This document shows, piece by piece, positions 1 through 41,190 of a stretch of 64,000 bases of DNA. The DNA lies in NCBI RefSeq assembly GCF_006345805.1, contig NC_043000.1:59086001-59150000 (forward strand), given 5' to 3'. The position numbers and the translations under genes are program-made. Source of the DNA: Octopus sinensis (lineage: Eukaryota). Positions within the stretch are counted from its first letter, which is position 1. Each line of letters opens with the position of its first letter. The notes under the pieces are model-generated. The model worked only from the letters and a program-made list of their open reading frames with translations, ran no database searches and was not told where the DNA came from.

Positions 1-169
1 CAGTCTCAATTCAGACACATGCATATTTGTATATTAACATGTCTTGGTTCACCAAATAACAAAGCATTGGTAGGACCGAGGCTATAATAGAAAGCATTTG
101 CTTAATTTACTAAGCAGTGAGATCGAACCTGAAACCATTTAGTTGATGACAGGCTTCTATACAGTTTCT

Positions 170-560
170 TATTTCTTTATTGTCCACAAGGGGACAAACA
201 AGGACAGACAAAGGTATTAAGTTGATTACATCAACCCCAGTGCATAACTGCTTCTTAATTTATTGACCCTGAAAGGATGAAAGGCAAAGTCAACCTCGTG
301 GAATTTGAACTCAGAACGTAACGGAAGACGAAATACCTATTTCTTTACTACCCACAATGGGCTAAACACAGAGGGGACAAACAAGTACAGACAAATTGAT
401 TAAGTCGATTACATCGACCCCAGTGCGTAACTGGTACTTAATTTATCGACCCCAAAAGGATGAAAGGCAAAGTTGACCTCGGCGGAATTTGAACTCAGAA
501 CGTAACGGCAGACGAAATACCGCTAAGCATTTCGCCCGGCGTGCTAACGTTTCTGTCTGC
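170..560 (-). mobile_element. tRNA-derived SINE (duplicated core), Octopus-type family A
   Basis: Two copies of the core gcctttcatcctttcggggtcgataaattaagtaccagttacgcactggggtcgatgtaatc on the minus strand, plus a head with B-box-like gagttcaaattcc. The same family recurs at about 9620, 40510, 60436, 61182 and 63238. Confidence 0.8.
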
Positions 561-763
561 TAAATTTCACTTTTGAATCATTTAGTCAGCACAAGGTTAA
601 TTTAGAAGACATTTGCCCCTGGTGAATACACACTGCGAGAGAACCAGCTACATACCTTTGTCCACGATATATATCATACTGGTGGAAAAATCTAAAATAA
701 ATAATAGGAATCATTTCTTTACTGATATTCTAAAATCACCTTTGTAGTGCTTTCTCATGAAGG

Positions 764-935
764 GAGCTGGTGCCATGTAAAAAGTACCCAATACATTCTG
801 TAAAGTGGTCAGCATTAGAAAGGGCATCCAGCTATAGAAACAAAGCCAAAACAGCTATAAATCCTTGTATTAGCACATGTCAAACCGTCCAACCCATGCC
901 AGCATGGAAAACGGATGTTAAATGATGATGATGAA
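764..935 (+). mobile_element. SINE/RTE-related repeat ending in (ATG)n
   Basis: aagggcatccagctatagaaac...gtccaacccatgccagcatggaaaacggatgttaaatgatgatgatg. Related copies lie at about 3745-3990, 4880-5000, 27720-27925, 32400-32560 and 43180-43460. Confidence 0.65.
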
Positions 936-970
936 CTTTACCTAAAAAGTTGTTTTTTTATCATTTGCAG

Positions 971-1060
971 CAAGAATTCTTTAGTTTTGCATGTGAAGTA
1001 CCCTGGGTAAAATGTGTTATACAAAAGTATAGCAGTAACTTAATTGGACAGCTGCTAAAG
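971..1060 (+). CDS. IPO13: importin-13, internal exon (QEFFSFACEVPWVKCVIQKYSSNLIGQLLK)
   Basis: Acceptor ttttttatcatttgcag|, donor AAG|gtgagt, 90 nt, phase 0/0. Joins in frame to the next exon. Position matches human TELLPRCGEVESVGKVVQEDGRMLLIAVLE (recalled). Confidence 0.75.
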
Positions 1061-1926
1061 GTGAGTGACAAAAAATATAGATCTCCATTTAAAGTAAGAC
1101 AACCATGTATTCCAACTCGTATACGAAAACAGTTTTTAACTTTGATCTTATGACAATTGTATGCTAAAATAACTTTTCAGTTTCATAAATTCTTGGCCAT
1201 CATATTTATATTCAGTGAAGTAATAATTCTAAAATCTCCAGGTAGTTAACAATGGTGGTTAAGCTGTATACTTTACAACAGCATGGTTCCATTTTCAATT
1301 CCATAAGCTACTTCCTTGTATCATAGCCTTTGCTCAATCAAAATCTTGTGAGTGAAGCCTGTCTGTCAGAATCGGTGTAGAATCCCATAAGGAGGTCTAA
1401 TGTTTAGGAGAGCAAACATCCAGTCAAAAGGTTAGTAGTATATGGTTATGGAACTGTAGAACTTTCAAAATGGCTCAGTTCACCTAACTGTAAATTGATA
1501 CCAAATTTAATTACTAATGTGCCAAAAGAGTTCTATATAAACCATTGTCATAATGTACCAGTGAAGCCTTATGAATATGAGTGTTCTTTGGAAACACCAG
1601 AAGTGAGATTTAACCTGATAGTTCCATTCTTAATAAAGTTTAGTTATATCTGATTCATTCTATAAACATAATGTAATCTTTTATAATTAGGAATGAAAAA
1701 TTAGTCAGAAGTTTCAATGCAAATAAAGTTTTGTTTAATTTAAATGCTTATTTTACAAGTTTCAATTTTCCAGCTTAGCAGAGAATGTCAAATTTTTGCT
1801 ACTGCAAATGCATGAACATTACAAGATCTTATTGCTTTTGTTTTACAAATGTGAGTCATCATACTTTATCAGATTATCTAATTACATCATTAAAATGCAC
1901 TGAAAAATTGGTGTGATGTATTTCAG

Positions 1927-2108
1927 GGTATTGAAGGAGAATGTCCCAGGTCAGTTCTTGATCAATATGCTGATGTACTACTTGCCCTAAATAAACTACA
2001 TATCGAAGAATTGACAAAATTTATGAACAACGTCATTTCCAGAGATGATAGGCCTCTAACCAAACAATCTAAAGATCAAAGAAAACATTTTTATACTTGT
2101 GTTTTAAG
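1927..2108 (+). CDS. IPO13: importin-13, penultimate exon (GIEGECPRSVLDQYADVLLALNKLHIEELTKFMNNVISRDDRPLTKQSKDQRKHFYTCVLR)
   Basis: tttcag| acceptor, AAG|gtaata donor, 182 nt. Resembles the IPO13 C-terminus GGQASRSLMDCFADILFALNKH...EQKDTFSQQILR. Confidence 0.9.
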
Positions 2109-2960
2109 GTAATAATTTTTTTTCTTTTTGGGTTGACTTCTTTATTATTACCCATTGTTTAAAAAAAAAAAAATAGGATAAAAAACATTTGTATGAATTT
2201 TAGTTATTATAACTATGAATTTGTTCTTCAAAAACATATTCTTTTGCACCTGAAGGTGCAGGCAAAATTGTGTGGTAAGAAGTTCATGTGAAAGCCACAA
2301 ACCACATGATTTTCAACCCATCTCATGACATGACACTTTGGATAAGTATCTTCTATTATATGATCAAAGCATTGTGAGTTGATTTGGCTCACAGAAACTG
2401 AAACCAGTTGTGTATGTATGCATGTATATATATATATGTTAATGTTTCCTTGTTTTGACATCATGTGCTAGTTATAGACAAATGTCAGAGTCATTCCTCA
2501 GTAATCAATGAAATCATGTCCAGCCATTGTGTTGTTAGTGTTCAAAGAATTTAGGGGTTATGTAATGTTACTTAGAAACAGGTGTAGGTTAATGTGCCTC
2601 AAATTTCACCTGGTGCATACCAGCCAAAAACAAAATGGATTTTTGTATGAGAATCTTTGCAATGGCATCACTGACATCTACCATCCTCCTGATTTTGCCT
2701 TGATTCACTCATTTTATGATCAATGAGGAAACAAGCTAATCAATTTTTATCAAATTTTGTTGTATGGACATTGCCCAGTTTCCAAATGAATTTTCCATAA
2801 ATTATAATTTGAAAGTTTATATTTAGTCATTTCAAAAGACCAAATGAAGAAAATGACATGCAATATAGAGTAATAATGAAAAAAACGCCTTACTTTTAAT
2901 AGTAACATCAACTTTTGAGTTTAGCACCAATTTGAATTCCTATTTTGCTTGTCTTTTAAG

Positions 2961-3075
2961 GGAGAGAGTTAACAGAAGACGAGTGCGTGAACTTGTGAAA
3001 GAATACTCAATGCAGTGCCGAGGTTTATTTGGTACAGAATATGGCAATCAATGGAGTCAAAGTATCATGGATTGA
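2961..3075 (+). CDS. IPO13: importin-13, terminal exon (ERVNRRRVRELVKEYSMQCRGLFGTEYGNQWSQSIMD*)
   Basis: gtcttttaag| acceptor, phase 2 matches the previous exon, TGA at 3073-3075. Matches the conserved IPO13 tail RERVNKRRVKEMVKEFTLLCRGLHGTDY. Confidence 0.92.
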
Positions 3076-5290: not shown

Positions 5291-7917
5291 TCTTATATTC
5301 AGTTTTCCTCTTAAATCTAAGTCAGGTAGTGATTCAGCCATAAGGCTATCAGTGTAGAGGTGTTCCCAGTCTCGAATTCCTGCTATGGCCTGGAGGTCTA
5401 TGATAAACAAGAACTACACTGAATTTATTACTACACTTGTTGCCAACCTTCACTAACCACTCTTCTATCCCTAGCTTCTGCATTGACCACCAGATAAGGG
5501 AGTAGAAGTTTATTTTTGGCCAAATACTTCTGCAGTTGCCTTACAAGGAAAGTAGTACGTTCTCTGAGATACAAAACCAAACTACATCTCATCTAGGTTC
5601 TCCCAATTATTTGCACTATAGCCTTTTCTATAACTTTCATTACCCAGTCCAGCAGTTTGATACCTCTGTAATTATTTGTTAGGCATCGCCTGAACCTTTG
5701 TAGCTGTAGATTATGGTACTGCTACACCAGTTGGGTATGACTCCCTTATGGACAACCTGATTAACTATGCAGGTGACTAGGCCAGATATTTTAAGGATCT
5801 TGGTGGTGATTCCTGATGGGCCAGGTTTTCCATTTTCCTATTCTTAACTGCTTTATCTACCAAGCTACTGTCCATTTGGACAGCTGGATCTATATTAGGC
5901 AGACTAAGCAATGTGTTGTTCTAAGAACTTACTAGGCTACAAGTTTTAAGAGCTAACATATATAATATCAATTGTACATATCCGCTCGACAATACCATTA
6001 TTTAGGCTGTACAATCCTCAAGGATCAGAAAATTGAAGTTACAAGATGTTACTAACTCCCAACATGTTAAATATGACTTTACTGTCAGGCCATATGCTCA
6101 TACAACCGAAAATGTCTCAGTATTTTCAAGGACAAAGTATTTAAGGAAGAACCGCTGGTCCTTTGTTCAACCAGAAATAAAAGTACCTATTGGCAGATGG
6201 AGTTCCATTTCTGCTCTCTCCTGGCCCTGTCAACTACGCCATTCAAACCACCATGTCACCTTAGGTTGAGAAGGGACTTTGCATGTCACAAATTTATTCA
6301 GTTGCCCTTAAGTTGTTACATGTGCATATATAAACCATAGTCAGGAACTACGAGACAGTTTACACCAACGATAGACTTGATGGAAGTTTGATTTACCCAT
6401 ACAGAGCATCATTTCCAATCTTACATGTAATCATGTCTGAACATGGTGAAATATTACCTTAACTGGATCAGGTTGGCAACAGGAATTACATCCAACAGTA
6501 CAAAATCTGTCTGATCCATGTGAGCATGTATTAACAGATTGTCTTTATTAGTATATTATTCAATATTGCATATGAATGTGTATATACTTAACATTTACCA
6601 GTGGTTTCTCCCATTTTTTTGATGACAGGTATGCTAGTAAACTGACATTCAACAATGTCCCAGCTTCTACATAGGTGACCTGCTAGAAATGTCAAATCTG
6701 ACCTACTTTACTATCAACCATCCTAACCCTCCACCTGGACTCCTGAGCAAAACAAAAAAAAAGTTGCATATGCAACTCAAGGGTAATGGTTGCAACCAAA
6801 CTGAACAAAATCAGCTATATTTTTTTTCTATGTGTTTGTTATAGCTTTATCAAGAATTCAGAGATGACATCCTATTCCCATTCAAGTGGGAGTACGGAGT
6901 GACAAGGTTAAAAGCACACACAAAGGATGGAATAAACACCATGAAAATATAGATTTAAAGTAAGATCTGGGACAAAGATCAAATTCTAAATCAGTTTTAA
7001 TGCAAGCACTTAATTGGGAATTAGTGCCATTCCACATTGTCAAATTGCAAAAATTGAGGAAAGAAATTTTGTGACATAAGTTGTTCCAAAAATTCCAGTG
7101 GATAACAACCTTTATCATGTCTGTCTGTACTTTATTAGTGCAGTAGTTCCTTACCTCTTCCATGTCATCCAGCATTGACATTTGCTTTAATCACTTCATC
7201 CTTTAGATCCCTTCAAAGTCATCTAAGTACGTCAACAGTACAAGTCCCAATATGGGGCATAAATGTCAAATTTGAGTGAAAGGAAAGGGAACTAAGCAAT
7301 CAGCCTCGAAACTAATTCACTGCTGGATTTTAAACTTGTATGGTTCAGTTATTGGACTAAAAGAGAATGCTGAGAGAACACTGACAAACCAAATTTAGTC
7401 AGCATATGTCATTAACAACAAATGGAGGCAATAGGTGGACTACACCAAAACTAACGTTAGTTATCTGGAAGGAAAGCATTCTACAGTTACTTTACAAATA
7501 GTTCAGTCAGATTTATCCCCCATCCACCCAATATCACAAGGCCTGGCAATGTCATCAGGCTAAAATAATCACATTGTCTCCTAATCTTGGAAGATATCTA
7601 GCAAGTGGAATTTGCATGAAGAAAACTCAAAACAGGAACCAGACATCAAAGATCAGATATTTTTCTTTAAACAGATGGTAATATTAGACAAAACTGGCCA
7701 ATTTAAATACAGCCTGCTACACTGAATAGAAACAAAAGCACCTAAGTCCAGAAATATAGTATTCTAGTATTTTATGCTCCTTACACACAGCTGCTATTAT
7801 TCCAGCAATTAAGCTAGTGACCCTGCTGCTATACTGCCACATTCAACATGTAGCCCAGATCTCACAAGTATTTTATGGTGATTTGAATTTTTGTCGCCTT
7901 AAGTATTTATCAGGACA

Positions 7918-7923
7918 TTTATT
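7918..7923 (-). terminator. candidate RPS12 polyadenylation signal AATAAA
   Basis: tttatt on the plus strand, about 95 nt downstream of the RPS12 stop codon. Confidence 0.55.
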
Positions 7924-8015
7924 AAAATACCAAGCCGAACTGAAACAATACAGTGAAAGTCTGTTTTACAAACACTTTATTAACATAGCATATGCTCACA
8001 GAATGCTATAAGAAG

Positions 8016-8078
8016 TTATTTCTTGGACTTGAAATATTCATTCAAAACATCAAGTGCTTGTGATTCTTTTCCATAGTC
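8016..8078 (-). CDS. RPS12: 40S ribosomal protein S12, last exon ([20 protein letters not shown])
   Basis: ttttatttcag| acceptor, 63 nt, TAA at 8018-8016. Close to human [20 protein letters not shown]. Confidence 0.97.
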   Translation of the reverse strand, partial: [20 protein letters not shown]

Positions 8079-8369
8079 CTGAAATAAAACAAATAGCAAA
8101 AATTTAACTCTGAAGAACAAAATGTTAGGTACTTAAAACACTAGTTGCATCAAAGACCAACATAGTCATACCTGCTGAGCAATAAGATGATATAGCACAC
8201 AAAATTTACACCAAGCTGCAAATTATACTTTGTCCTAAATTTTTTTCAACACATACAAATAATTTCATTTATCCAAGTCAATTGTGATATAACTTTACTT
8301 CTTTCAGTCCTATATTTAAGAGATGGGAAATGTACATTATTTGCATTTGATGGATATTTGCTCTCATCT

Positions 8370-8995
8370 TTGTTGTTAACATGTTTCGGCTTATATACCC
8401 TCCAGCCTTCATCAGGTATCTTGGAGGAAATTTCGAATCTGGGTTCTCATTCCTAAGGTATTTTTCAATGTTATTATTCAGATCACTGCTGGGAATCAAA
8501 CTTGGAATCTTGGGGTTAGTAGCCCGAGTTTACCACAATGCTCATAGGCAATTATGGAGTGAATTTTAAGGCTTATAAATCTAATATTTTCCTATCCTTC
8601 CTTAATACTGGTTCCCATATGCTACTCATATCTGCACTTAGGAGGTTGTTGTGTCCTAGCATATGGGCTGCTTCTGTTTAGTTTTCGTATTTTCCAGTGG
8701 TCTCCATTATTCCATACATGATCAGCTATATCTGATTTATCAATATCTCATGTCACAGCTTTGCCATGTTCATCCACCCTTATTTTGATGGGGTGGCATG
8801 TGTCACCTTTGCGTAACCTACCACAGCTGCATGGGATGGAGTACGCAGTTTTTGGTCATATTCTCTTCTATTGGTGGTTTTACTCGAAGGAGATATTTGC
8901 GAAGTGTTGTATTACTCTTGAATACTTGTATCGTTTGAGAGAGGCCTTTCACATAGGGTAGACAGTGGAGAGTTTATTGGTTCCATGCCCTTTTT
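8370..8995 (-). mobile_element. Penelope-like element remnant (GIY-YIG endonuclease plus typical 3' end)
   Basis: Minus-strand reading across frameshifts gives CLPYVKGLS...RVKPPIEENMTKN-CVYSIPCSCG...IRVDEH...SDIADHVW. 3' motif ctgatgaaggctggagggtatataagccgaaacatg. Confidence 0.75.
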
Positions 8996-9297
8996 TTTTC
9001 ATAATTGGAGTGGATAGTATGTATATGGGGTAGTTGTTGCTTAATAGATTGTTATTAAGCTTGATAATTTCTTTGTGACAGTAAAGTCATATTTAACGTG
9101 AGAACAAGGCAGTTTAATATGTTGGGAGTTGTGAATAACTTCTTGTAACTTCAGTTTTTTTTTAATGTTGCAGTAAGATCTCTTTTGCAAAAGAGAATCT
9201 CTCCATTTTTTCCACTAAGCAAAACAATATTTTTCACCTTGTGACATATTTTAATGCCTCACTTCATGGTTGAAAACTTGGGGGTAACAAAATACGG

Positions 9298-9365
9298 TTG
9301 GGTCAGTTATTGCAATCCTCAATAGATATTTCAGAAGAGGGAGCATTTAGTTTCATCATATCCAA
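9298..9365 (-). ncRNA. SNORD100: box C/D snoRNA, SNORD100-like, copy A (last RPS12 intron)
   Basis: ttggat-ATGATGA-aactaaATGCTCCCTCTt-CTGA-aatatcta-TTGAGGA-ttgcaataa-CTGA-cccaa: boxes C, D', C' and D, terminal stem, and a guide complementary to 18S AGAGGGAGC. Confidence 0.85.
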
Positions 9366-9619
9366 CCATATTACATAGTATAAAACAATGCAACAGAAAA
9401 TAAGCCATAGTATTTTCAAGAATAAAGTAGTTAACCAAGAGTCACTGGTCTGTTGTTCAAATCACAATACAAGAACCTATAAGTCAGAGGGAATTAAAAT
9501 ACTCAACAATTGGATGAGTAATGTTAAGACAGAATTGCAAACGTAACCTGCAAAGAAAAGTCGTATCCCTGTATATTTCAAGTACTTCACTTCTATTAAC
9601 ATTACATAACCAACAAAGT

Positions 9620-9800
9620 GGCGAGCTGGCAGAATTGTTAGCATGCTGGGCAAAATGATTTCATCCATCTCCACTGAGTTGAAATTTCACTAAGATCAAC
9701 TTTGCTCCTCATCTCTTCAGAGTTGGTAAAATAAATACCAGTTGAGTACTGAGGGTCAATGTAATTCACTCACCACCTCCCCCGAAATTGATGGCTTTGT
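9620..9800 (+). mobile_element. tRNA-derived SINE family A
   Basis: gtggcgagctggcagaattgttagcatgctgggcaaaatg...atcaactttgctcctcatctcttcag...aaataccagttgagtactg. Confidence 0.75.
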
Positions 9801-10232
9801 GCCAAATTTAGAAATCAACATTACATATTCCTATCAAGACTATATACAAAACAATAAAAGCAACTTAATATCTAATAACTGAGGAATTCCAGAAAATTCA
9901 TTTACTTTCTAAAATCATCTTTCAATCATTTTTGGGCAAACTATTTCAATCATGACATCAAAGGCATTCTTCACTAAAATTCAATTCTCTAGAGAGAAAC
10001 AAATTTTCCCTCTCTCTGAATTAAAATGAAAATCATGGCTTTGAAGTCAAGGAGTTCACTTCACAACCACAGGACTCTGGGGTTGCAAACAGATCAGTGT
10101 TTCAAATAAAAATACTTTGTTATTTATCCAACACATCCTTGAAACTTCATAACCTATGAAGCCACTGCTTATAAAACAGTATTTAAAAGAAATTTCTAAA
10201 AATAGACTATATCATAGAATAGATTGCATTAC

Positions 10233-10334
10233 CTTTACAACAACACAGCCACATCCATTCACTTTTCTGGCTTTGCCTTCAACATCAATACGACGAAGAC
10301 CAGCCCATTCGCCTAACTTCTTGCTGTCTTCAAC
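10233..10334 (-). CDS. RPS12: RPS12 exon ([34 protein letters not shown])
   Basis: tctttcttttcag| acceptor, AAG|gtaatg donor, 102 nt, phase 0/0. Confidence 0.97.
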
Positions 10335-10671
10335 CTGAAAAGAAAGACAAAACTTCACTGTGATAATATCTATAAAATTAGCAAAGTTAAAAAAAATGAA
10401 TAAACAACTATTTTCACAGAAGTCAATTTAGATTCAATCCTTTAGCATTTAAACCTGTTATTTCCAGCCCAAATATTCTGCTTTATGTTCAAACTGACAA
10501 GATCGTGCTTCTCTCACCTACCCTACAATGTCATTTAAAAAAAACAATCACAATATCATATTCTCAAAATCATGAATAAGCATTACATTTCACTGAAGCT
10601 GAATAACGGGTTAAATAACAGTATTACTGTTTCTACAGGCAATGCCAATTTTGTACACTTCTTAGCCTCAA

Positions 10672-10734
10672 TTGGACTAGTTACTATAACCCTCAAAAAG
10701 TATTTCAGGAAAGGGAGGAGCATCTATCCCAACC
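10672..10734 (-). pseudogene. decayed SNORD100-like copy G
   Basis: ggttgggatagatgctcctccctttcCTGAaatactttttgagggttatagtaactagtccaa aligns along its length to copy A. Box C and box D are broken. Confidence 0.6.
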
Positions 10735-11268
10735 AAACAACTCCATTGTTTAAAATAACATTACAACCAGAACATTACCAAACAAGTGTATTTACTCCTT
10801 AGAAATAAGGAGTAAAATATAAGGACGGCATGCTTTAGCTAGGTTAGACCTAATGATCACTAATATCACAAAATTGGATCATTCAGGTACTTCAGACACA
10901 ACACATGTATGAAAATAAAGCATAACTTACTAAAAACATCAGCTGAATCTCACCCATCTATCTATATATATATATATAAATAAATAAATAAAACAAGCAG
11001 TCCTACATGCACTTGAAATTTAGCCTGCCCCAATATTCAGATACCTAGTGTAACTACCATTGTCTTTATGAAAAATTCACTAAATGGAATAAACTATGTT
11101 CAAGAAGAAAGCAATATTTGAGACAAAAAACTATGTTGCAGTGAGATTATCTCTTTTGCAAAAGAGAATCTCCCCACTTTTTCCACTAAGGAAAATAATA
11201 TTTTTCACCTTGTAATATATTTTAATGCTTCACTTCATGGTTGAAAACTTGGGGGTAACAAAATACGG

Positions 11269-11336
11269 TTGGGTCAGTTATTGCAATCCTCAATAGATAT
11301 TTCAGAAGAGGGAGCATTTAGTTTCATCATATCCAA
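11269..11336 (-). ncRNA. SNORD100: box C/D snoRNA, SNORD100-like, copy B
   Basis: Identical to copy A across the boxes and guide. Sits in a duplicated cassette of about 290 bp. Confidence 0.85.
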
Positions 11337-11501
11337 CCATATTACATAGTATAAAACAATGTAACAGAAAATAAGCCATAGTATTTTCAAGAATAAAGTA
11401 TTTAACCAAGAGTCACTGGTTCAGTACTTCAGACACAACACGTGTACGAAAATAAAGCATAACTTACTAAAAACATCAGCTGAATTTCACTCACCCATCT
11501 A

Positions 11502-11549
<48 letters not shown>

Positions 11550-11680
11550 TAAAACAAGCAGTCCTACATGCACTTGAAATTTAGGCATCATGACTGAAGT
11601 GTCCCATCACAGGACTACTTAAATCAATGTATATTTGAGAGGTTGTTTAGATCGAGGTCATATTTTGTAAATTCTTAATA

Positions 11681-11731
11681 GGTGAATCATTGCAATCTTC
11701 ATTATGTATTAGGAGAGAGAGCATTGTCCAA
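11681..11731 (-). pseudogene. decayed SNORD100-like copy H
   Basis: ttggacaatgctctctctc-ctaa-tacata-atgaaga-ttgcaatga-ttca-cc has the same layout as the intact copies, with mutated D', C' and D boxes and no box C. Confidence 0.5.
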
Positions 11732-12155
11732 TGCAACAGCAAAATTTTTCAGATGTATCACAAGATGTTTTAAGTTATGGATGTAATGGAAAGAGGGCAT
11801 AAGAGAGAGAAAAAAAACCAACCTATGAAATCAGCTATAAACCTTGACTGATTGCCATTGCAATCTGTTCAAAGAGGTTTGACTTAGCATGTGAATTAAG
11901 TAAAAAGTTTCCAGTGATGAAAATGACAAAAGGTTAGTGGCTACTAGTCTGTCCCAATATTCAGATACTTAGTGTAACCACCATTGTCTTTATGAAAAAT
12001 TCACTAAATGGAATAAACTATGTTGCAGTGAAATTATCTCTTTTGCAAAAGAGAATCTCCCCACCTTTTTCACTAAGCAAAATAATATTTTTCCCCTTGT
12101 GATATATTTTAATGCTTCACTTCATGGTTGAAAACTTGGGGGTAACAAAATACGG

Positions 12156-12223
12156 TTGGGTCAGTTATTGCAATCCTCAATAGACATTTCAGAAGAGGGA
12201 GCATTTAGCTTCATCATATCCAA
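12156..12223 (-). ncRNA. SNORD100: box C/D snoRNA, SNORD100-like, copy C
   Basis: ttggat-ATGATGA-agctaaATGCTCCCTCTt-CTGA-aatgtcta-TTGAGGA-ttgcaataa-CTGA-cccaa. Two substitutions versus copies A/B, both outside the boxes and guide. Confidence 0.85.
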
Positions 12224-12690
12224 CCATATTACATAGTATAAAACAATATTGTTACATATCAGAAAAATAAAAGGTGAAAACAGCTATGCATGTTGGGACA
12301 AATATTTTTTGTAACAGATTCAAAGAAAATTTAGATAAACTTTACATAAATGCAATGAAATGGATACCTCAAGATAAGTGATTTTGTCATTCTACATTTA
12401 GCTCAACTGGGCCTTAAACTTCACCAAATTGGAAGATTCTAGTACCTCAGACAACTATCTATACAATACCATGAAACTCAACGGTTGAGGTTCAGTAGTT
12501 GCTTGACCTGCTAAGGATAGCAAAACTTTCTTTAAATCCCATCCTACCACTATAATAAAGAATACATTAGTCACATATATAATAAAGAGACATAAACGAA
12601 AGTAACAGGGGATTTCTGATCATGGATTTACTTAATGAAGAATGACCATAGGTTAAACGGCCCCAGCCACACGGTAAAAATACTTTCTAT

Positions 12691-12753
12691 GCTGGATCAG
12701 ATGTCGCAATCCATATTATACATCATTAAAGAGAGCACTCGGTCATATCCAAC
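12691..12753 (-). pseudogene. decayed SNORD100-like copy F
   Basis: gttggatatgaccgagtgctctctttaatgatgtataatatggattgcgacatCTGAtccagc keeps the terminal stem and box D. Box C and the guide are eroded. Confidence 0.55.
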
Positions 12754-13522
12754 ACATAACTTAGACAAGTGTATAAAAGGTTTTTTAAAATAAGCAAAAC
12801 AACCAAGGTACAAAACCTCCAAAAATGGAAATGCTGAATGTATCAAAGTTGCTGCCAATTAGTTACTCAAAAACTGCTTGAGACAGTGTCATCTTTAACC
12901 CTTTTGCATTTAAACCGGCCATAACTGGCCAAAATATTCTACCTGCTTTTGGCCAGGCCTGGCACCTCATGCCAACCCTACAATATTATTCTAAAAATTA
13001 ATAGTTAATTCATCAAAATCTCAAACTACAAAATATTGCACAAGTAATCCACAATAGCGTAAATAAATAAACATTACTTTTGACAGAATAGTGTGAATTG
13101 GTTATTTTTGCCAAAAATGCTAAGTTACAGGGATGCAAGCAAACACAGGATGGGAAGCTAGTGACAAACCCAACACACATGACATGTCACCTTTCAAAGT
13201 ATCATCCCCAAAATCATCAAGTCTGGGGGCCATTGTAGAAAGTACTTGATAGTGAGAGAGAGACCATGCAAATACCTTTGACTATAAAATTCAATTCTTA
13301 ATTCTAATAATGTTCCAGAGTTACAGTTTAAACATCTTGGGTACCACAGTCTACTTGGCCATTTATACTTTAGCATACAGACTAACCCTAACCCATTTCA
13401 CTGATACTACTGCAGATCACACGCTATAGTAGTACCCATCTTTGATTATAAGTCAATCATGCCTGGCCTGAAGCTAAGCAAACTTCCAAGCATTTTGTAT
13501 TTTGTACCATTCTCAACAACAA

Positions 13523-13589
13523 TTGGGTCAGACACTGCAATCCTCATTCTATAATCAGTAGAGGGAGCATTCATCATCATCACACCCAA
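13523..13589 (-). ncRNA. SNORD100: box C/D snoRNA, SNORD100-like, copy D (older paralog)
   Basis: ttgggt-GTGATGA-tgatgaATGCTCCCTCTa-CTGA-ttataga-ATGAGGA-ttgcagtgt-CTGA-cccaa. GCTCCCTCTACTGA and ATGAGGA match human SNORD100 as recalled. Confidence 0.9.
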
Positions 13590-14162
13590 CACTACAGTAA
13601 TAGTTAAGGAAAGAAAAAAATCCAAGTTATCACTAATAATGGGAATATTCAAAGCAAAAGAAACCAGTATCAATCACTTGAATAAAGCCATAATTTGAGT
13701 AAACCAAACATTACATAAAATTCAATGACTAGTAAAAATAAAAACTGTTCATATATAAAAGACACCCCCACCCCCAATCAGTAGCCTATCGTTATTAAAC
13801 GTCCATCTTACGATGCCTGCATGGGTTAGATTGAATATTTGAAGTATTTTCTAAAACTGAATGCTCTTCCTATTTGCAACTCCACACTGGCTTCCAGGTA
13901 AGGTTACATTCCCCATAGCCAGATGGAAAAACCTTGTCTTGTGTAATATTGCTCATTTATAACCATGACTTCTACTAGACAAGAGCACCTACAGACACAA
14001 CGGGCTTCCAGGCGTATACATCTAGACAGATTATTGCAGAAATATGAACATGTGCAAGCTGAAAGCGAAACAATATCAGAAGCTATATCCAACTAGCTTG
14101 GTCTAATAATCAGTAACAACAGTACTTTTTCATCTTCACGAGGCTAATATAGTAGAAAATGT

Positions 14163-14231
14163 TTGCTCAGTGCAAAGCCATGACAATTTACTTGAGGTTG
14201 AGAAAGAGGGAGCATTTATTATCATACTCAA
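14163..14231 (-). ncRNA. partly degenerate SNORD100-like copy E
   Basis: ttgagt-ATGATAA-taaATGCTCCCTCTt-tctcaa...gca-CTGA-gcaa. The 11-nt guide and box D are intact, box C has one mismatch and D' is lost. Confidence 0.55.
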
Positions 14232-15335
14232 TTCTTTCACCTTGGAAGGAACATTACCTATACAGAGGTATGACCTTTCACAAGATGTGCTGCATTGTAG
14301 AATACTATTCATATTTGCTGAATAAGCATCTATAAAAATTATAAAATCGCATACCAGTTATTAATTGAAGACAGTCGGTTTAAGTAAGGGAGTTAACTTG
14401 ACTACTACATGAGACAAATAGTAAGAAACATATAAGTTATTTGGAATAAATTTACATCCATTTGTTGCAGCTAATGTAGTTACTCCTTGATTAACATGCA
14501 TGACAATATCAATTTTTGATCAAGTATTTCTTCACCGTCGGATTAGAGTAAGATTTATCAATGACAGACGTGTGCTAATTACGAGGGTGATATACTATAA
14601 CATGCCAACATGATAAGCGGAAGTATAATGATGACGATAGTAGACATCTCTTTAAAATACAAAAAACGTGAGTTTTTATACAGGCAATTTAACAATTAGA
14701 AGTTATGACTGGACAAGTAATTGCAGTACTAATATCAGCTAATGTAGGGGTATTAAATGCTACAAGCCAATTGTGTAACACATGGAATCACAAGTTAAAA
14801 GCAAATATCAGCTATATATAACTATACAAAGGGCCTATAATCCTTTAAGGGATGTTTGCATCGTAGCTTTCCGGTTTTTACAAGTGTTCCGTGAAAAGCT
14901 AAATGCGTTAATTTTGCAATGATGGATATGGGTGTTTAAATGATTTATGATTGAGAAAAGGAAAATGGAAAAATTGATATATAGACATCAGGTTATTCAA
15001 AGATAGTTAAATCAATATAATATGAAATTCTTATCCCTACAGCCGTTTCCATAGTCAATTAGAGAAATAGGTAAATTAAATTTTCATATTTAAACTGGTT
15101 AACTGGGAGAATTTTCCAAAAAGGAGTTAAATTGCAACGTGTTGGTTGACCATGAGACTCGGACATATATATATATATAATATATCCATGCATACACACC
15201 AAAGTAAAATATAACCTGATACAAATCCATATGGTTTTACTTTCAAAAGCTGACACGAGTAATTAGAAAAAAAATTCAGCAGAAGCATTTTAAAAATCAA
15301 TTTTAAAACCCAAGTAAATAAATAATTGCTCTTAC

Positions 15336-15438
15336 TTTGAGGAGGTTGATACCGTGTTCAGTGCAGAGAGCTTCAACTAGTTTAGTATAGCTGGGTTCAT
15401 CTACACTGTTTGCCAAGATACACAAATGGGCTTTTCGT
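15336..15438 (-). CDS. RPS12: RPS12 exon ([34 protein letters not shown])
   Basis: ttcctcccatctag| acceptor, AAA|gtaaga donor, 103 nt, phase 2/0. Confidence 0.97.
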
Positions 15439-15559
15439 CTAGATGGGAGGAAACAAAAATAGTTTAGAGACATAGAAACTATAGCGTAACACTTAAATAG
15501 CATACGCGAAGCACTCACACACATCGACCTATCAATAGAAAGTGAAGAAAATAATCTTA

Positions 15560-15827
15560 GCATTCTTTCGATATAACTCGACAAAATCAAAACATTTCAA
15601 TTCGGGCATTTCCGTGGAAGCAAATGACAGTTCGATTGTTTTCTGCTTGAAAATTGCGGAATTTACATACACATGAAACGGGTAAGAACAAATATGCAAG
15701 GCTTTTTTTTTCTTCAAATTTAAAATGAGACATTACTGGCATAATTTCGTTATATCTGTTCTACACAACCCACGGAAATAACCCAAGTGAAATGTTTTGA
15801 TTTTGTCGAGTTATATTGAAGGAATGC
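15560..15827. repeat. 58-bp inverted repeat (MITE-like) in an RPS12 intron
   Basis: Arms at 15560-15617 and 15770-15827 match at 52/58, with a perfect 29-bp core. Confidence 0.85.
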
Positions 15828-15917
15828 CACATATATCATTATTTTCGCAATTAAATACCATGGAATCATAATTTAGTCGTCACAAATATTTAAACTAGGA
15901 AGAAAACCAACACATAC

Positions 15918-16043
15918 TTGTCTAGTGCTTTACAACACTGGCTGAGTCCTCTTTCTAAGCCATCGTGAATGAGAGAGGTCTTTAAAATTTCCTGCAAAGC
16001 AGAGTATAAATCGAGCGAGCCAGCAGGAGCTGGGGCATCTTCC
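15918..16043 (-). CDS. RPS12: RPS12 exon ([42 protein letters not shown])
   Basis: ctctttacag| acceptor, CAA|gtatgt donor, 126 nt, phase 2/2. Confidence 0.97.
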
Positions 16044-16314
16044 CTGTAAAGAGTAATAATTCATAATTATAGGTTATGACAAACATCAATATGTAATAAT
16101 TATTTTTATTACATATTTTAATATGTAATAAAATTACATATTTTATTTTAATCTTTTAGCTATCAATAGTCTTTTAGTCAGCCTTTAAGTGAGTAAATGT
16201 AGTATTAAAAGTATTTTCAAACCAAATAAAAGCATACAAAATTCAAATAAACGAAATATTAACATTTATAGCATGAGGAAGATGGAGGTAAAACAGGAAT
16301 AAACGTGTACCTAC

Positions 16315-16331
16315 CTTTCAGTATCAGACAT
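16315..16331 (-). CDS. RPS12: RPS12 first coding exon (MSDTE-R; exon begins at 16347)
   Basis: aaatttcag| acceptor at 16348, ATG at 16331, AG|gtaggt phase-2 donor. The five exons total 411 nt, giving 136 aa plus stop with no frameshift. Confidence 0.9.
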
Positions 16332-16899
16332 TTTCTCGGGTTACTAGCTGAAATTTATTAGAAAAGAAATTACAAAATAAGTATTAGATTATGTCCTTTA
16401 GATATAAATTATTAAATATTACGACGATGCTCAATAAACAATGAAATACATTAATAGATTGAAAGAATGTAACATACCGTTCAATCCCGATCACAGATTC
16501 AAGAGAAAGAACAACTTCCGTTTTTGTGAAATGAACTATGGGTAAAACGGAAGTTACACATAGAAGCACGTGGATTTACCATGTATTTTATGTTGCATCA
16601 CTGACCATAAAAGCATAATTTTGTAAATACATAGGTTTTTTTTTTCGTTTTCCGTCTAATATATTATTTTCCTGCTACAAATAAAAGATGTATTAAATGT
16701 TACAAACAAACTAGCTCGTACCAGTGTGTTAACATCAGTATTTCTGCGGTAGCCTAGTTTTGCATTCAGCTCTCTAACGCTAACAGTACGAGAACACATG
16801 AAAGCTACAACTAAAAAAGTTATAAGATTTAGTTTCACATAACGTAAGAAAGGCTATAAGTTCAAACTACTTAGCTAACAACAGATCGCTCCATTTAAA

Positions 16900-17200
16900 A
16901 CAAAGGTAAATAAATTTGACTTATCATAGTTTGTTCGGAGGCAAACTGCGGCTCGCGGGACTTTCTCAATGGCACACCTTACGAAAAATAACCTTGAATT
17001 GTTTTAGTAATGCGGCCTGCTTGGTCGTGAATCAAGCTTCGTTGCTTTTTGAAAACTATTGCTCATACCTTTCGAAGACTAGCAGTTACATTTTACTTTC
17101 TTCACTAATTATATCTAAATGCGGCGTAACTTCGGTATAGGTACCGAAAGTACCGGATACATTTCAAGAAAGTGTTTTTTTATATATATATATATATATA
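16900..17200 (-). promoter_or_regulatory. probable RPS12 promoter and non-coding first exon (donor AAG|GTATGA at 17069)
   Basis: Local CpG enrichment, a strong minus-strand donor, and pyrimidine TCT/TOP-like runs (actttctt, gcctttctt). The exact TSS cannot be determined. Confidence 0.45.
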
Positions 17201-17715
17201 TTAGAAGAAATGAGGTAATCAGAAGATCGGATGGTTCATATTTACAGATATTTATCTATATATTACATTTTTTACATATGTATCATATCATTCAGATCAT
17301 ATATATATATATATGGGGGGGGGGAGAAAAGGGTTTTTGGGATCTTTTCCTTTTGAACGGCACTTTGTAACATAATTTCTAGGTAACTAAAAAGTTTTAA
17401 ACTTCGTATATTGGTAGAATTAGTTTATAAAACATCATTTTCTCTTGGCTTTATTGAGAAAATTCTCTAGGTTGTAAGATATTTCGGCAATTTTAACCAA
17501 TCACTGGAGTCCATTTAGGTAAATAACATTCTGTGCATAATGAATATGTCCCTCCTTTAAGAAACAGATTGGGTTTATTTACATTTGTGAAGAAAAAAGA
17601 TACCCTACCCCTAAATCTAAAATAAATTGAAATGCAATAGATCGATACTAGGGTTATAATTATGGGTGACAATTTCATACGACACCGCTACGGAAAATGA
17701 GATTTTTTTCTAGCG

Positions 17716-20700
17716 GTGTCAAATGAAAATGGCAGAATCATTGGTGATGGTGGATGGCCTTGCAACCTTGGTTTTGTTGTTGATGGCCATAACCTATACA
17801 TGGTGCTGGGAGGTAGGAGGCCTCGATGTTACATGTGTGGAAGCGAAGAGCACGTCAAAACTAAGTACCCAACAGCAATGGAACAACAAAAACAGCAAGA
17901 AAAAGATCATCAACCACAACAAGGATAAAGGAACCCTTGCTACCCACACTATCACCAACACAGAAGACAAGCAAAGGGAGTACGACAAAAGAAATATACA
18001 AACCAAATATGCCAACGCCAACAAATGAACATACACCAGCACCTGGAAAAACACCAACAACAACTAAAGAAATAAAAAATAACAAAAGAAAACACAAAAA
18101 CTTATACCCCTTCCCCTATATCACATACAGCACAAACAAACAGCCAACAACCAACATCAATGAAAACAGCAACACAACCACTTACACAAACAATCATAGA
18201 AGCCTACAAAATGCCCCTACCACCATCCGATTCCTCAGAAATTTCGTCGGAAGATGAAACCAGTGAGGAATGGCAAATAGCCAGAAAAGGAGCAAAAAAA
18301 CAACCAAACCAAATGCAAATGCAAACAAAGCAGGGGGATATACATTTCCTCAAGACATTTTGAAATCTACCACAAACAACAGCAACACCAACACCACAAC
18401 AATATATACAGCAAACATGTTCACAGCTATAGACACTAAAAACATAGATTTGATGGAATACATCAAATCAAAAACAAACCTAACAAAAGATAACAAAAAC
18501 AAACAACCACCCATACACAACACCACCGGAGCACATCCAAATACTACACATCTCAAGAAGTCTACACCACACACTAAAAGGCATTTTCCCCAGTGCGGTT
18601 GGTAAATGCCAAAAATACCTCATGAAGAAACTGTATTGGGATCTCCTTGACGACAAACCATGGGAAGAGAAAGCAAAAACTTTTGAGCAGTAACCCTCTA
18701 TTCTTTCGTATGTGTTTTAATTCACTAGGATTATGATCAAGATTTGTTGTGTGGCTTGGAAACAAGGGTACCTCTTAAATGACATACAGACACACTAGTT
18801 AAAAATCATAGCTATAAGTGAGACCAGACTCCATAATCCACGGGCCCTAAAGTCCATGGTACTTTTTCGCAAGAGTCTGGATCTTGAAGTAAAGACAATA
18901 TTCGTAGACCCGGAGGGTAGACTGGTCGTTCTAGATGTCGATGGCAGCAATGGGTGCACTTTTCAAATTGTATCAGTCTATGCACTGCCTTTAACAGGTC
19001 AGCCGGATTTCTTTCGATGTCTAGAAGTATTCCTAGGAACATCTCATCCTTTACTTTTAGTGGGGGATTAGAATGCTACCTTGGCCACACATGTAGACTA
19101 TGTGGGCAGAGATAGGAATAGATGGGGATGCAAATGCCTCGGAGACCTGCCCAGACACTTTCCACTGTCTGACAGGTACCAACTCGATCACCCGAATGCG
19201 CCAACGTGGACATGGAGCAACCACATCGGGTCGTCGAGATCATATCTAGATAGGATACTGCGCAGGACAGTAGATAGAGATAGCATAGGGTATCCACAAT
19301 TCCACATAGTCAGCTACACAGATCACAAACTTGTAACGTGTACACTAGACTTAGGTAAGACACATAGGCAGGGTCCCGGGTACTGGAAACTAAACGCATC
19401 TTTCCCATCGAGGTTGGCTCTAGACCAACACTTCAATGCTAAACATGAAGGGTGTGTTGTCAGAGCTAGGATGTGTTCCCTAAGGAACGAAAGCGTTGGA
19501 CGCACATGAGAGGCCTGGGTGGCGGAGGCGCAACAGGGCAACAAAGCCACCATTCGGTCTCTGGTAGATGAACAGGGGCGTGAATTACTCGAGCCAAGTA
19601 AAATGTGTGAGGCCTTTCAACAGCATTTTGCTCGAATGTTCGGGACAAGTGGCAGGTAAGAACGCAAGGTGGATTTCATTGCCTACCTACACAGCCTGCC
19701 ACAACTCTCGACAAAAGAGGCAAGGTGCTGCGAAGGTGCCATCATGGCGGCAGAATGCTCAAGGGACAAATCACTGAGTTTGGATGGTCTACCCTACGAG
19801 CTTTACAGTTGTATGCCAGGCTTGTTTGGAGACGTCTTGGCAGCAAAACAGGAGCATCCCTGGTTTTGTGAGCCGAAGAGCTGTAACACTGCGGAAGAAA
19901 GATCTAGATGAGTGGGACGTGATAGATAACTTTAGGCTCATCACTCTGCTCAGTGCAAATTTGAAAATTTTGGCCAAGGTGTTAGCCAAGAGGATGGCGC
20001 TTGTCATTGAGAGAAACTGGTTGACAAGGCGCAAACGTGTGCCATGCCAGGCCGGAGCATCCATGACAACCTCTCATCTGATGCGCTACATCATAGACAG
20101 GGTAGTTAAGGAACCTGGCATGGGTGGGGCCCTGATCAATTTGGGTCAATCCAAAGCTTTCGATAGGGTAGACCATTGATACTTGGAGGCTGTCCTCATA
20201 GCGGCTGGTTTCGGTCCCATCTTCTGCAGCTAGATAGCTGCTTTGTACAGAGGCATCCATTCAGTATTTCACATAAATGGACATCTATCGAGACCTTTCG
20301 ACATTGCATGTTCAGTCCATCAGGGATGCCCCCTCTCATCGCTTTTATACATGACTCTCAAGCCACTACTGTGAAAGCTGGCGACTGAGGAGCATCCCGT
20401 AAGAATTGGGATGCAGGATGAGCATGTCTACATACGCAGACAACATCACCGTCATAGTGTCTAGCCAGAAGCACATCGAGCTGGTTGGTGAAAGACTACG
20501 AAGTGGTAACGAGCAAAAATCAACCAGGAAAAGTCAGTGGGCTTGTAGCTTGGCACCTGGAGAAGCAAGCCCATGCCATCCACCAGCACTTCCATCATGG
20601 GACGCTGGACTGACGGTCCTGTCAAATTGTTCGGGGTCTGGTTTGGTCCAGACCTCCAAATGGAGAAGAACTGGGATGAGATAATGAGTAGGGTGGTCAC

Positions 20701-40509: not shown

Positions 40510-41190
40510 TCTTTCTAACTATAGGCACAAGGCCTGGAATTTTGTGGGCAGTGGTTAGTCAACTTCAAATTTATTGACCCTAGTACTCAACTGGTACTTA
40601 TTTTATCAATCCCGAAAGGATGAAAAGCATTATCAACCCCAGTTGAATTTGAACTCAGACGTAAAACTGGAAGAAATGCCACTAAGCATTTTGCATGGCA
40701 CAATAACAATTCTACTAGCTTGTTGGTTATGCTAGAACTACTACTAACAAGAGTAAAAAAAGAGTTGCCAGGAATAATACTTATATAAAGCTCACTGAAT
40801 TGTTTAGAAGTAAATAGAAAGCAGGTGTATCTTATTTGTAAAGATTTGGTTAATAAAAAAGAACTGGTGTGGTAAAAAGCTTGCTTCATAACCACATGGT
40901 TCCAGGTTCAGCCCCACTGCATGGCACCTTGGGCATTTGTCTTCTACTATAGCCTTGTGAGTGGATTTGGTAGATGGAAACTGAAAGAAGGCTGTCGTAT
41001 ATGTGTATATATATGTGTCCCCCACTATTGCTTGACAACCGATGTTGGTGTGTTTACGTCCTTGTAACTTAGCAGTTCAGCAAAAGAAACTGATAGAATA
41101 AGTCCTGGGGTTGATTTGTTTGACTAAAAGCAGTGCTCTAGCATGGCCAGTCAAATGAGTGAAACAAGTGAAGATTAGTATTTTGAGATA
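40510..41190. mobile_element. adjacent SINE A (-) and SINE B (+) copies
   Basis: Same diagnostic cores as the other copies. Confidence 0.75.

Follow-up and report, generated by a model that had tools for sequence, protein, structure and literature searches.

RPS12 and Its Intronic Elements

The window, i.e., the whole 64-kb stretch of Octopus sinensis DNA that was analysed, encodes RPS12 (eS12) on its minus strand, as identified by tblastn with human RPS12 as the query. The window matches chromosome CM016862.1 of this species at 100% identity. The coding region (8016..16331, minus strand), delimited by this search and the spliced CDS, comprises exons at 16315-16331, 15918-16043, 15336-15438, 10233-10334, and 8016-8078. 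Every intron has GT-AG ends, and the spliced CDS specifies a 136-aa product identical to RPS12 of Octopus vulgaris, O. bimaculoides, and O. sinensis. Position 16478 marks the end of a 5'UTR exon, and the poly(A) signal is located near 7975. Intron 4 (10335..15335, minus strand, 5,001 bp; between codons ...LLK / VED...) harbors seven SNORD100-like elements and intron 5 (8079..10232, minus strand, 2,154 bp) harbors one. All eight are in the sense orientation relative to RPS12, and the gene model thereby bears out the first-pass annotation, which had placed seven of them in a single 5-kb intron. Three box-intact copies and four relics reside in intron 4, such that at least two snoRNA genes share one intron. 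The intact copies are 934-3,188 nt from the 3' splice site, with none at the usual distance of ~70-90 nt; cryptic exons may provide each intron 4 copy with an intron of its own. A search of the other RPS12 introns for SNORD101- or SNORA33-like partners gave no match at E <= 10.

Four copies, all on the minus strand, are intact. The copy designated type I (intron 4, 13522..13590) comprises box C TGATGA, guide ATGCTCCCTCTA, D' CTGA, C' TGAGGA, D CTGA, and a 7-bp terminal stem; the layout is that of the type II copies, with a guide ending in ...GCTCCCTCTA-CTGA. The type II copies are located at 12154..12225 and 11267..11338 (intron 4) and at 9296..9367 (intron 5), and the mature regions of the latter two are identical. 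Their 5' part reads GGTTGGA-TATGATGA-(A/G)ACTAAATGCTCCCTCTT-CTGA, where the guide of 12154-12225 is ATGCTCCCTCTT-CTGA, and box D' is followed by 9 nt-TGAGGA-TTGCAATAA-CTGA-CCCAACC. Nucleotides specific to type II include, for example, the spacer AAAUAUCUAU. Minimum-free-energy folds yielded a 6-7-bp terminal stem in each intact copy, which extends to 11 bp in the three type II copies when flanks are included.

To score the elements, we used a covariance model, R1, which was trained on cephalopod copies with the four relics left out. R1 assigned 82 bits to the type I copy, 94 bits to 12154-12225, and 97.3 bits to both 11267-11338 and 9296-9367. The relics are likewise on the minus strand in intron 4 and were detected with E = 1e-6 to 8e-5. 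A partly degenerate copy (14163..14235) retains the guide, with TGATAA as box C and CTCA as box D' (29.2 bits over 14189-14235), and folding did not reveal a convincing terminal stem in it. The three decayed copies have lost box C and/or box D and carry guide mutations: 12689..12756 lacks box C and has the guide GCTCTCTTT but retains box D and the stem (35.2 bits), 11683..11725 lacks box C and has the guide GCTCTCTCT and TTCA as box D (27.6 bits, E 8e-5, filters off), and 10669..10736 lacks box C and has a deletion in the guide and CTAG as box D (35.5 bits). A scan of the window with R1 returned exactly these eight elements, and the sequence flanking the other loci examined contained no further copy either. 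The four intact, one partly degenerate, and three decayed copies of the first-pass annotation were thus all recovered, both by sequence reading and by R1. Independently of the model, ATGCTCCCTCT with at most one mismatch matched seven times in 64 kb where 0.61 matches are expected (none of 100 shuffles reached seven), and six of the seven matches are on the sense strand of the two RPS12 introns.

Distribution in Other Animals

The same guide is present in multiple copies within RPS12 in the genomes sampled, mostly in the homologous intron. We identified five copies in Argonauta, four and two in cuttlefish, nine in scallop, seven in mussel, 3-4 in abalone, four in tandem in a nemertean (ribbon worm), two in an annelid, and two in Nematostella (sea anemone), where one is found in each of two introns. 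The intron homologous to octopus intron 4 is the host in cuttlefish, Argonauta, scallop, mussel, abalone, the annelid, and Nematostella. Several putative SNORD100 copies in RPS12, usually in the same intron, are therefore common among the sampled non-vertebrate animals; since the arrangement recurs in other molluscs, the nemertean, the annelid, and Nematostella, it is no octopus novelty. A multi-copy state restricted to octopus is contradicted by these counts. According to the first-pass annotation, an array that is common and already annotated across molluscs would remove the novelty; the array is indeed common, except that in these animals, too, it falls below the Rfam gathering threshold. 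The first-pass annotation had proposed an ancient host-snoRNA pairing followed by lineage-specific amplification. Of this, the antiquity of the pairing stands, and the recent duplication events in the array are lineage-specific; however, the pairing was already published (in the passages of PMC3412847 that treat it), and the multi-copy cluster is not specific to octopus.

A broader and more tentative possibility, which we regard as somewhat doubtful, is that multiple SNORD100 copies in one RPS12 intron are the usual, selectively kept state of non-vertebrates (Cnidaria and Lophotrochozoa), with vertebrates as a reduced exception and with copies homogenised or turned over in each lineage. If so, several box C/D snoRNAs would have to be released efficiently from each intron, by endonucleolytic cuts between units or via unannotated micro-exons, and there would be a dosage requirement for the Gm436-equivalent methylation.

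Conservation and Evidence for More Than One Functional Copy

Sequence comparisons showed that the boxes, guide, and terminal stem are conserved. Among 11 cephalopod copies, the terminal stem covaries (83% paired, with both-side changes in four of seven pairs), a result matched by one of 500 shuffles, and all slid registers performed far worse. Across 45 copies drawn from 10 lophotrochozoan genomes, ATGCTCCCTC and box C do not vary, even though the introns cannot be aligned elsewhere, and the core GCTCCCTCT is kept in the Nematostella copies. Types I and II differ at 1-2 of 32 box and guide positions versus 13 of 29 spacer positions (Fisher p = 7e-4). Type I has an orthologue in O. bimaculoides (L002:12472-12545) with unchanged boxes and guide, and alignment of the upstream flank identifies copy 12154-12225 as the orthologue of L002:15345-15419.

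An alternative is that only one snoRNA gene works, most likely type I at 13522-13590. Every other copy, the three near-identical type II ones among them, would then have arisen incidentally through intron expansion and segmental duplication, would not be expressed, and would simply not have decayed so far. Half of the array has already decayed, and selection need not be invoked for the spread of the type II copies, given that the duplicated segment carrying them is larger than the copies themselves. The CTCTA-CTGA form seen in vertebrates and cuttlefish is that of type I, which also has the top Rfam score. Moreover, type I is 92.6% identical between O. sinensis and O. bimaculoides versus 89.2% for the intron background, and 38% of background windows are equally conserved, i.e., there is no significant excess. 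Yet types I and II, which are only 78% identical overall, have kept 30-31 of 32 box and guide positions, and both are intact in O. bimaculoides as well, while three similarly old copies are without boxes. Furthermore, 3-9 box-intact copies have been kept in each of Argonauta, scallop, mussel, abalone, and the nemertean. We consider a single working gene to be unlikely; the four previously unannotated snoRNA genes are probably functional. The three youngest copies arose too recently for selection on each of them to be visible.

Duplication History of the Array

The intron 5 copy is part of a segmental repeat unit (9165..9470, minus strand) that equals 11133-11441 and 12020-12247; the first two of these are 93.5% identical with gaps and 97% identical over 272 ungapped nt. 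The three type II copies are ~97% identical and reside on a ~230-310-bp segmental duplication, where the young copies have 130-230 bp of flank in common. Part of the unit (9165-9388) coincides with the breakpoint of a ~820-1,090-bp inversion relative to O. bimaculoides, and intron 5 of that species, which is free of gaps, lacks this copy. The relics, in turn, are orthologous between the two species and their lesions are independent. The orthologue of 14163-14235 (L002:11830) has lesions at different positions, and relic 12689-12756 is orthologous to relic L002:13322-13384. The CTAG of relic 10669-10736 is also present in relic L002:15967-16038, and its decay thus predates the split of the species.

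Collectively, these observations suggest that the array evolves by local, DNA-level birth and death, in keeping with the birth-and-death process put forward in the first-pass annotation, with the three ~97% identical young copies representing birth and the four relics representing death. Selection has probably held a minimum of two old paralogue types intact, namely type I at 13522-13590 and type II at 12154-12225. The copies at 11267-11338 and 9296-9367 are very young and probably originated within the O. sinensis/O. vulgaris lineage, either by segmental duplication or by rearrangement, and four older copies are in decay.

It is highly improbable that the copies are instead snoRNA retrogenes (snoRT-like, formed via reverse transcription of snoRNA-containing RNA) or passengers of transposable elements. 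A run of 10 A follows the intron 5 unit in sense orientation, and the unit is embedded in a dispersed repeat with a second occurrence at 6029-6204. However, four of the 10 A's are part of the inverted dispersed repeat, and the unit lacks a target-site duplication and lies at the edge of the inversion described above. All eight copies remain within the parental host gene, in sense and with co-duplicated intron flanks. Membership in the snoRT class was rejected given the missing target-site duplication, the partly native A-run, the position of the unit at the inversion breakpoint, and the confinement of all copies in the window to RPS12.

Family Assignment and Predicted 18S Target

Searches against Rfam, in which SNORD100 is RF00609 with a gathering score of 58 bits, identified no family at its gathering score in the window. 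SNORD100 was the closest family for all four intact copies, although the snoU18 bit score was marginally higher for type II. The best SNORD100 score, that of the type I copy, was 29.8 bits (E 0.0056), followed by 27.3 bits for both 11267-11338 and 9296-9367 and 24.4 bits for 12154-12225. The Rfam search suggested in the first-pass annotation therefore returned SNORD100 as the best-scoring family, but with no copy at the gathering score. Homologues at eight other loci were also under the threshold. The low scores are mostly attributable to the C'-D region, which is 9 nt in the octopus copies versus about 25 nt in the Rfam consensus. Since all copies score below the gathering threshold, family membership rests on the guide, box layout, and host gene. 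The SNORD100 box layout (TGATGA, CTGA, TGAGGA, CTGA, and a terminal stem) is present in all four intact copies. The guide, GCUCCCUCU(A/U)-CUGA, aligns column for column and in the same register with the vertebrate SNORD100 consensus GGCUCCCUCUACUGA. As a result, the fifth nucleotide upstream of D', a C, is opposite the first G of GGG in AGAGGGAGC, as originally proposed. The predicted guide-18S duplex is short (9 Watson-Crick pairs and at most one G-U), and the target is predicted in Octopus because this 18S segment is known to be universally conserved; according to the passages of PMC3412847 concerning Gm436, the site is conserved between sponge and human.

That the elements represent another box C/D family (as suggested by matches to snoU18, SNORD36, and SNORD11B) or generic C/D look-alikes is scarcely credible: although snoU18 (27.7 bits) just exceeds SNORD100 (27.3 bits) on type II copies and SNORD36 matches at 24.1 bits (gathering score 30), these alignments cover boxes and spacing only (E 0.7-7 versus 0.006-0.18 for SNORD100), the guide is common to the octopus copies and SNORD100 alone (9/9 nt in register), and, of these families, RPS12 is described as host only to SNORD100 (PMC10287158 and the relevant passages of PMC3412847). 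Judging from sequence, we consider it very probable that the elements are box C/D snoRNA genes, orthologues and paralogues of SNORD100, that are encoded in sense in two Octopus sinensis RPS12 introns, with the history proposed above and the mechanism proposed below.

Proposed Function and Significance

In each intact copy, a 6-11-bp terminal stem would close a k-turn formed by the ends bearing boxes C and D. The copy would bind the core proteins Snu13, Nop56, Nop58, and fibrillarin and would be freed from the excised intron. The guide 5'-GCUCCCUCU-3', which abuts box D' on its upstream side, would base-pair with 18S 5'-AGAGGGAGC-3', and fibrillarin would 2'-O-methylate the G opposite the fifth guide nucleotide, the equivalent of human Gm436. 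The sequences show the anatomy, host gene, homology, taxonomic distribution, and conservation pattern of the copies; their expression, the maturation of several copies from a single intron, and the methylation itself are inferences. The term polycistronic, used for the cluster in the first-pass annotation, would require such maturation of several copies.

These results add four probably functional snoRNA genes and four pseudogenes, overlooked by standard annotation, to a housekeeping locus of octopus. They also indicate that the Rfam SNORD100 model, with its much longer C'-D consensus, misses the family in the window and in every lophotrochozoan locus tested. The repeated one-guide arrays in single introns of RPS12 of molluscs, a nemertean, and an annelid offer a natural test system. 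With it one could ask by what route two or more box C/D snoRNAs mature from a single intron of a protein-coding gene in animals, and whether copy number tunes a single rRNA methylation. Neither the element type nor the mechanism is new; host-guide pairing, intronic clusters, and birth and death of snoRNA paralogues have all been described before.

Comparison with Known Systems

Like vertebrate SNORD100 (HBII-429, RF00609), the octopus copies have the C/D/C'/D' layout and the guide GCUCCCUCU(A) abutting D' in the same register. They are likewise in sense in an RPS12 intron, which is intron 4 in both mouse (Snord100; PMC10287158) and octopus under the same exon numbering. Vertebrates, however, have a single copy, as opposed to the four intact copies and four relics of octopus. 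SNORD100 was described in RPS12 from sponges to vertebrates as the guide for Gm436 in 2012 (Perina et al., PMC3412847, in the passages on this snoRNA). The sponge, cnidarian, and placozoan cases given there share the host-snoRNA pairing and the conserved guide and boxes with octopus and establish that the pairing is pan-metazoan. Lophotrochozoans and multi-copy states are absent from those passages, whereas we found two copies in Nematostella and 2-9 in lophotrochozoans.

The octopus array also resembles mammalian snoRT and SNORD115/116 arrays in that a single C/D snoRNA has expanded in copy number with birth-and-death dynamics. However, snoRTs are dispersed, with poly(A) tails and target-site duplications, and SNORD115/116 copies sit one per intron in a non-coding host, whereas the octopus copies lie together in one intron of a ribosomal gene that codes for protein, and duplication at the DNA level probably gave rise to them. 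Drosophila intronic clusters consist mainly of H/ACA snoRNAs, and rice and Drosophila clusters often mix different snoRNAs; unlike these, the octopus cluster comprises isoforms of one C/D guide, interleaved with their own pseudogenes, over 5 kb. What the octopus cluster shares with the intronic snoRNA gene clusters of rice and Drosophila melanogaster, as cited in passages of PMC2780460, is the presence of several snoRNA genes per host intron, in contrast to the vertebrate rule of one per intron.

A SNORD100 Gene Family Within Octopus RPS12

A human RPS12 query (tblastn) recovered four coding exons on the minus strand of the window, which together with a short ATG exon splice to a 136-aa eS12 protein, with GT-AG boundaries at all introns. 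This protein is identical to RPS12 of Octopus vulgaris, O. bimaculoides, and O. sinensis, and window 6000-18000 aligns with O. sinensis chromosome CM016862.1 at 100% identity and with the O. vulgaris locus at 98-99% identity. A first-pass annotation had placed eight SNORD100-like box C/D snoRNA copies in the introns of this gene, and reading of the sequence, guide-word counts, and covariance searches bore out those elements in every particular. Octopus RPS12 thus carries a SNORD100 gene family of four intact members and four pseudogenes, seven of them in intron 4 (10335-15335, 5,001 bp, minus strand) and one in intron 5 (8079-10232, 2,154 bp, minus strand).

The covariance model used here (R1) was built from 11 cephalopod copies, with the four relics left out of training. 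Its hits across the 64-kb window, with speed filters on or off, were exactly the eight minus-strand elements and no others. E-values for the four relics ranged from 1e-6 to 8e-5. Allowing up to one mismatch, the guide word ATGCTCCCTCT occurred seven times in 64 kb versus 0.61 expected, and six of these matches were on the sense strand inside the copy-bearing RPS12 introns.

Boxes C, D', C', and D are present in all four intact copies. The type II copies (9296-9367, 11267-11338, and 12154-12225) read, on the minus strand, GGTTGGA-TATGATGA-(A/G)ACTAAATGCTCCCTCTT-CTGA-AAT(A/G)TCTAT-TGAGGA-TTGCAATAA-CTGA-CCCAACC, and the type I copy (13522-13590, same strand) reads GTTGGGTG-TGATGA-TGATGAATGCTCCCTCTA-CTGA-TTATAGAA-TGAGGA-TTGCAGTGT-CTGA-CCCAAT. 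Over the mature region, 9296-9367 and 11267-11338 do not differ from one another, and 12154-12225 departs from them at two positions. In minimum-free-energy folds, a terminal stem of 6-7 bp closes each intact copy, extending to 11 bp in type II when flanks are included. Among the relics, 14163-14235 keeps its guide with box C as TGATAA and D' as CTCA; at 10669-10736, 11683-11725, and 12689-12756, box C and/or D is gone and the guide is mutated. A near-perfect 26-nt palindrome of the form AGATTCTCTTTTGCAAAAGAGAATCT follows each type II copy, ~105 nt to its 3' side (~9172-9200, ~11145-11175, and ~12030-12060, minus strand) and folds into a hairpin of ~11 bp; it is conserved among these copies because they were recently duplicated.

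Several features of the surrounding locus were also observed. An importin gene (~950 aa, Xpo1/TNPO3-IPO13 repeat domains) occupies window ~1-3075 on the plus strand, tail-to-tail with RPS12, and this neighborhood is common to Octopus, Argonauta, and cuttlefish (downstream of RPS12 in loci L001-L005). RPS12 intron 3 contains 58-bp inverted arms (15560-15617 and 15770-15827, 90% complementary, ~150 bp between them) on a ~240-270-bp segment that O. bimaculoides lacks in its intron 3 and that looks like a MITE-type insertion or palindromic indel. A dispersed SINE-like repeat of ~200 bp lies in intron 5 (9605-9814), with two further copies in the window (40512-40731, minus; 61253-61394, plus) at 67-73% identity; ARAGORN detected no tRNA-like gene in it.

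Family Assignment and Predicted Target

An Rfam search, which the first-pass annotation had proposed as a check, returned nothing at gathering thresholds in the window or in eight related loci, so annotation-grade membership cannot be claimed, but under permissive thresholds SNORD100 was the top family by E-value for each of the four intact copies (29.8, 27.3, 27.3, and 24.4 bits versus a gathering score of 58). The low scores reflect a C'-D interval of only 9 nt in the octopus RNAs versus ~25 in the Rfam consensus. Since boxes and guide (guide consensus GGCUCCCUCUACUGA) align in register with the family model, assignment to SNORD100 is still sound. Agreement with snoU18, SNORD36, SNORD11B, and archaeal sR families was limited to boxes and spacing. 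Neither SNORD101 nor SNORA33 was detected by Rfam at E <= 10 in 7000-17000, and weak matches to snoU83D (15811-15875) and SNORA69 (7572-7720), at E ~9-10, were taken as chance.

The alignment register likewise agrees with the earlier claim that the C five nt upstream of D' pairs with the first G of an 18S GGG: guide position 5, counted back from D', is a C opposite that G in 5'-AGAGGGAGC-3'. This G is the site given as human Gm436 in PMC3412847, and human Gm436 is equivalent to Arabidopsis Gm391 (PMC3511168). The predicted guide-18S duplex is short, at nine Watson-Crick pairs, to which type II adds a G-U at position 1, and the octopus target is predicted from the established conservation of that stretch of 18S. 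SNORD100 identity, RPS12 host, and predicted target are all well supported at the level of sequence; expression of the RNAs and 18S methylation in octopus are predictions.

Probable Selection and Predicted Processing of the Copies

Over the 11 cephalopod copies the terminal stem covaries: it is 83% paired, and in four of seven pairs both partners have changed. Of 500 shuffles, one matched this, and slid registers were 17-49% paired. Type I in O. sinensis versus O. bimaculoides is 92.6% identical against an intron background of 89.2%, an underpowered comparison in which 38% of background windows equal the type I value, and we therefore compared the paralogues instead. Types I and II share only 78% identity overall, with more than 15 differences; mismatches fall at 1-2 of the 32 positions in boxes and guide versus 13 of the 29 in spacers (Fisher p = 7e-4). 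O. bimaculoides retains both types intact, and three copies that predate the O. sinensis/O. bimaculoides split have lost boxes in both species. This paralogue pattern argues that at least two paralogue lineages are under selection.

SnoRNAs usually lie 70-90 nt from the 3' splice site. The intact copies are 934-3,188 nt from it, and because none is at 70-90 nt, snoRNP assembly would need to depend on the terminal stems. Internal copies would presumably be released via cuts between units or from unannotated exons.

Origin of the Young Copies

The type II copies sit on a larger repeat, in which 9165-9470 corresponds to 11133-11441 (97%, 272 ungapped nt) and to 12020-12247. Flank alignments showed that 12154-12225 shares its upstream flank, and 11267-11338 its downstream flank, with the sole well-assembled O. 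bimaculoides type II copy; upstream of 11267-11338 lie 62 bp native to intron 5 (window 11359-11420, equivalent to L002:17267-17328, where L002 is the O. bimaculoides RPS12 locus). The intron-5 unit (9165-9388) was not found in the gap-free O. bimaculoides intron 5 and is placed exactly where window 9161-8340 turns inverted versus L002:17340-18429. This interspecific inversion covers ~820-1,090 bp of intron 5. A second dispersed repeat (window 6029-6204, 9388-9495, and 9084-9161) persists unbroken both downstream of RPS12 and within the O. bimaculoides intron 5; its counterpart in the O. sinensis intron 5 is broken apart, part of it in reverse orientation, and the snoRNA unit occupies the junction.

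Retroposition might be read from an A-run adjoining the intron-5 unit. However, that run is partly native sequence of the inverted dispersed repeat, the unit lies at the inversion edge, and no target-site duplication was found around it. The shared flanks, inversion junction, and lack of a target-site duplication indicate that DNA-level rearrangement, rather than retroposition, generated the young type II copies in the O. sinensis/O. vulgaris lineage. A tandem-array reading is rejected, as TRF found no tandem repeat in 8000-15400 and the copies are segmental duplicates at irregular spacing.

Distribution of Multi-Copy SNORD100 Across Animals

RPS12 loci from other animals were fetched via a protein database and scanned with R1 and the guide word, with exons mapped by tblastn. 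Argonauta hians intron 4 (~5.1 kb) holds five box-bearing copies. The O. bimaculoides count, at least two intact copies and three relics, is a lower bound and unreliable, since a pair of N gaps (L002:13700-14317 and 14966-15268, assembly GCA_001194135.2) falls within its intron-4 array. Half a type II unit begins directly after the first gap, and the array is probably collapsed or misassembled; the only firm point on copy number is the gap-free intron 5 without a copy. The cuttlefish Acanthosepion pharaonis has two RPS12 loci ~2.2 Mb apart on contig CAHIKZ030000535.1 that differ in SNORD100 count: one intact copy in intron 4 and one relic in intron 5 (L001) versus three in intron 4 and one in intron 5 (L006). 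A neighbor-joining tree of the 70-nt copies was too weak for Octopus-Argonauta orthology of paralogue types; in it, the intron-5 copies of L001 and L006 cluster together, suggesting that this copy probably predates the RPS12 duplication.

Multiple copies were also identified in the mussel Mytilus edulis (six in intron 4 and one in intron 5), two Haliotis species (three and four), the annelid Paralvinella palmiformis (two), and Nematostella vectensis (two near-identical copies, one in each of two introns). The scallop Mizuhopecten yessoensis has nine in the homologous ~5-kb intron (L009:4036-8120), in two alternating subtypes, some with D' CCGA instead of CTGA; a longer stretch upstream of box D, TATGCATAACC(TG/GT)T(A/T)GGTTAC-CTGA, might serve as a second guide. 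Branchiostoma floridae yielded one weak match, and R1 and guide-word scans of the Aplysia californica RPS12 locus detected no SNORD100-like copy.

Alignment of 45 lophotrochozoan copies showed no variation in ATGCTCCCTC or box C, and mean identity is 85% within genomes versus 58% between genomes, which fits either independent turnover or concerted evolution within lineages. The multi-copy condition is common across the sampled non-vertebrate animals and, given its presence in other cephalopods, scallop, mussel, and abalone, is not octopus-specific. The lineage-specific amplification earlier proposed holds for the youngest two or three copies only.

Comparison With Known SNORD100 Loci

The ancient host-snoRNA pairing proposed for this locus stands, but it is not new: PMC3412847 already established RPS12 as the SNORD100 host from sponges to vertebrates. 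Our literature search found no paper describing multi-copy SNORD100 arrays in RPS12. Arrangement differs among the arrays: the nemertean Tubulanus polymorphus has a clean 132-bp tandem array of four copies, 97% identical, in the last intron (L012:3205-3670; 3.5-4 units, the final one stopping 87 nt short of the 3' splice site), whereas octopus has segmental duplicates at uneven intervals. Because the related arrays have no gathering-level Rfam score, Rfam-based pipelines would miss them. What is modestly new is comparative: multi-copy SNORD100 in RPS12 recurs across Lophotrochozoa and in one cnidarian, usually in the homologous intron, and slips past standard annotation.
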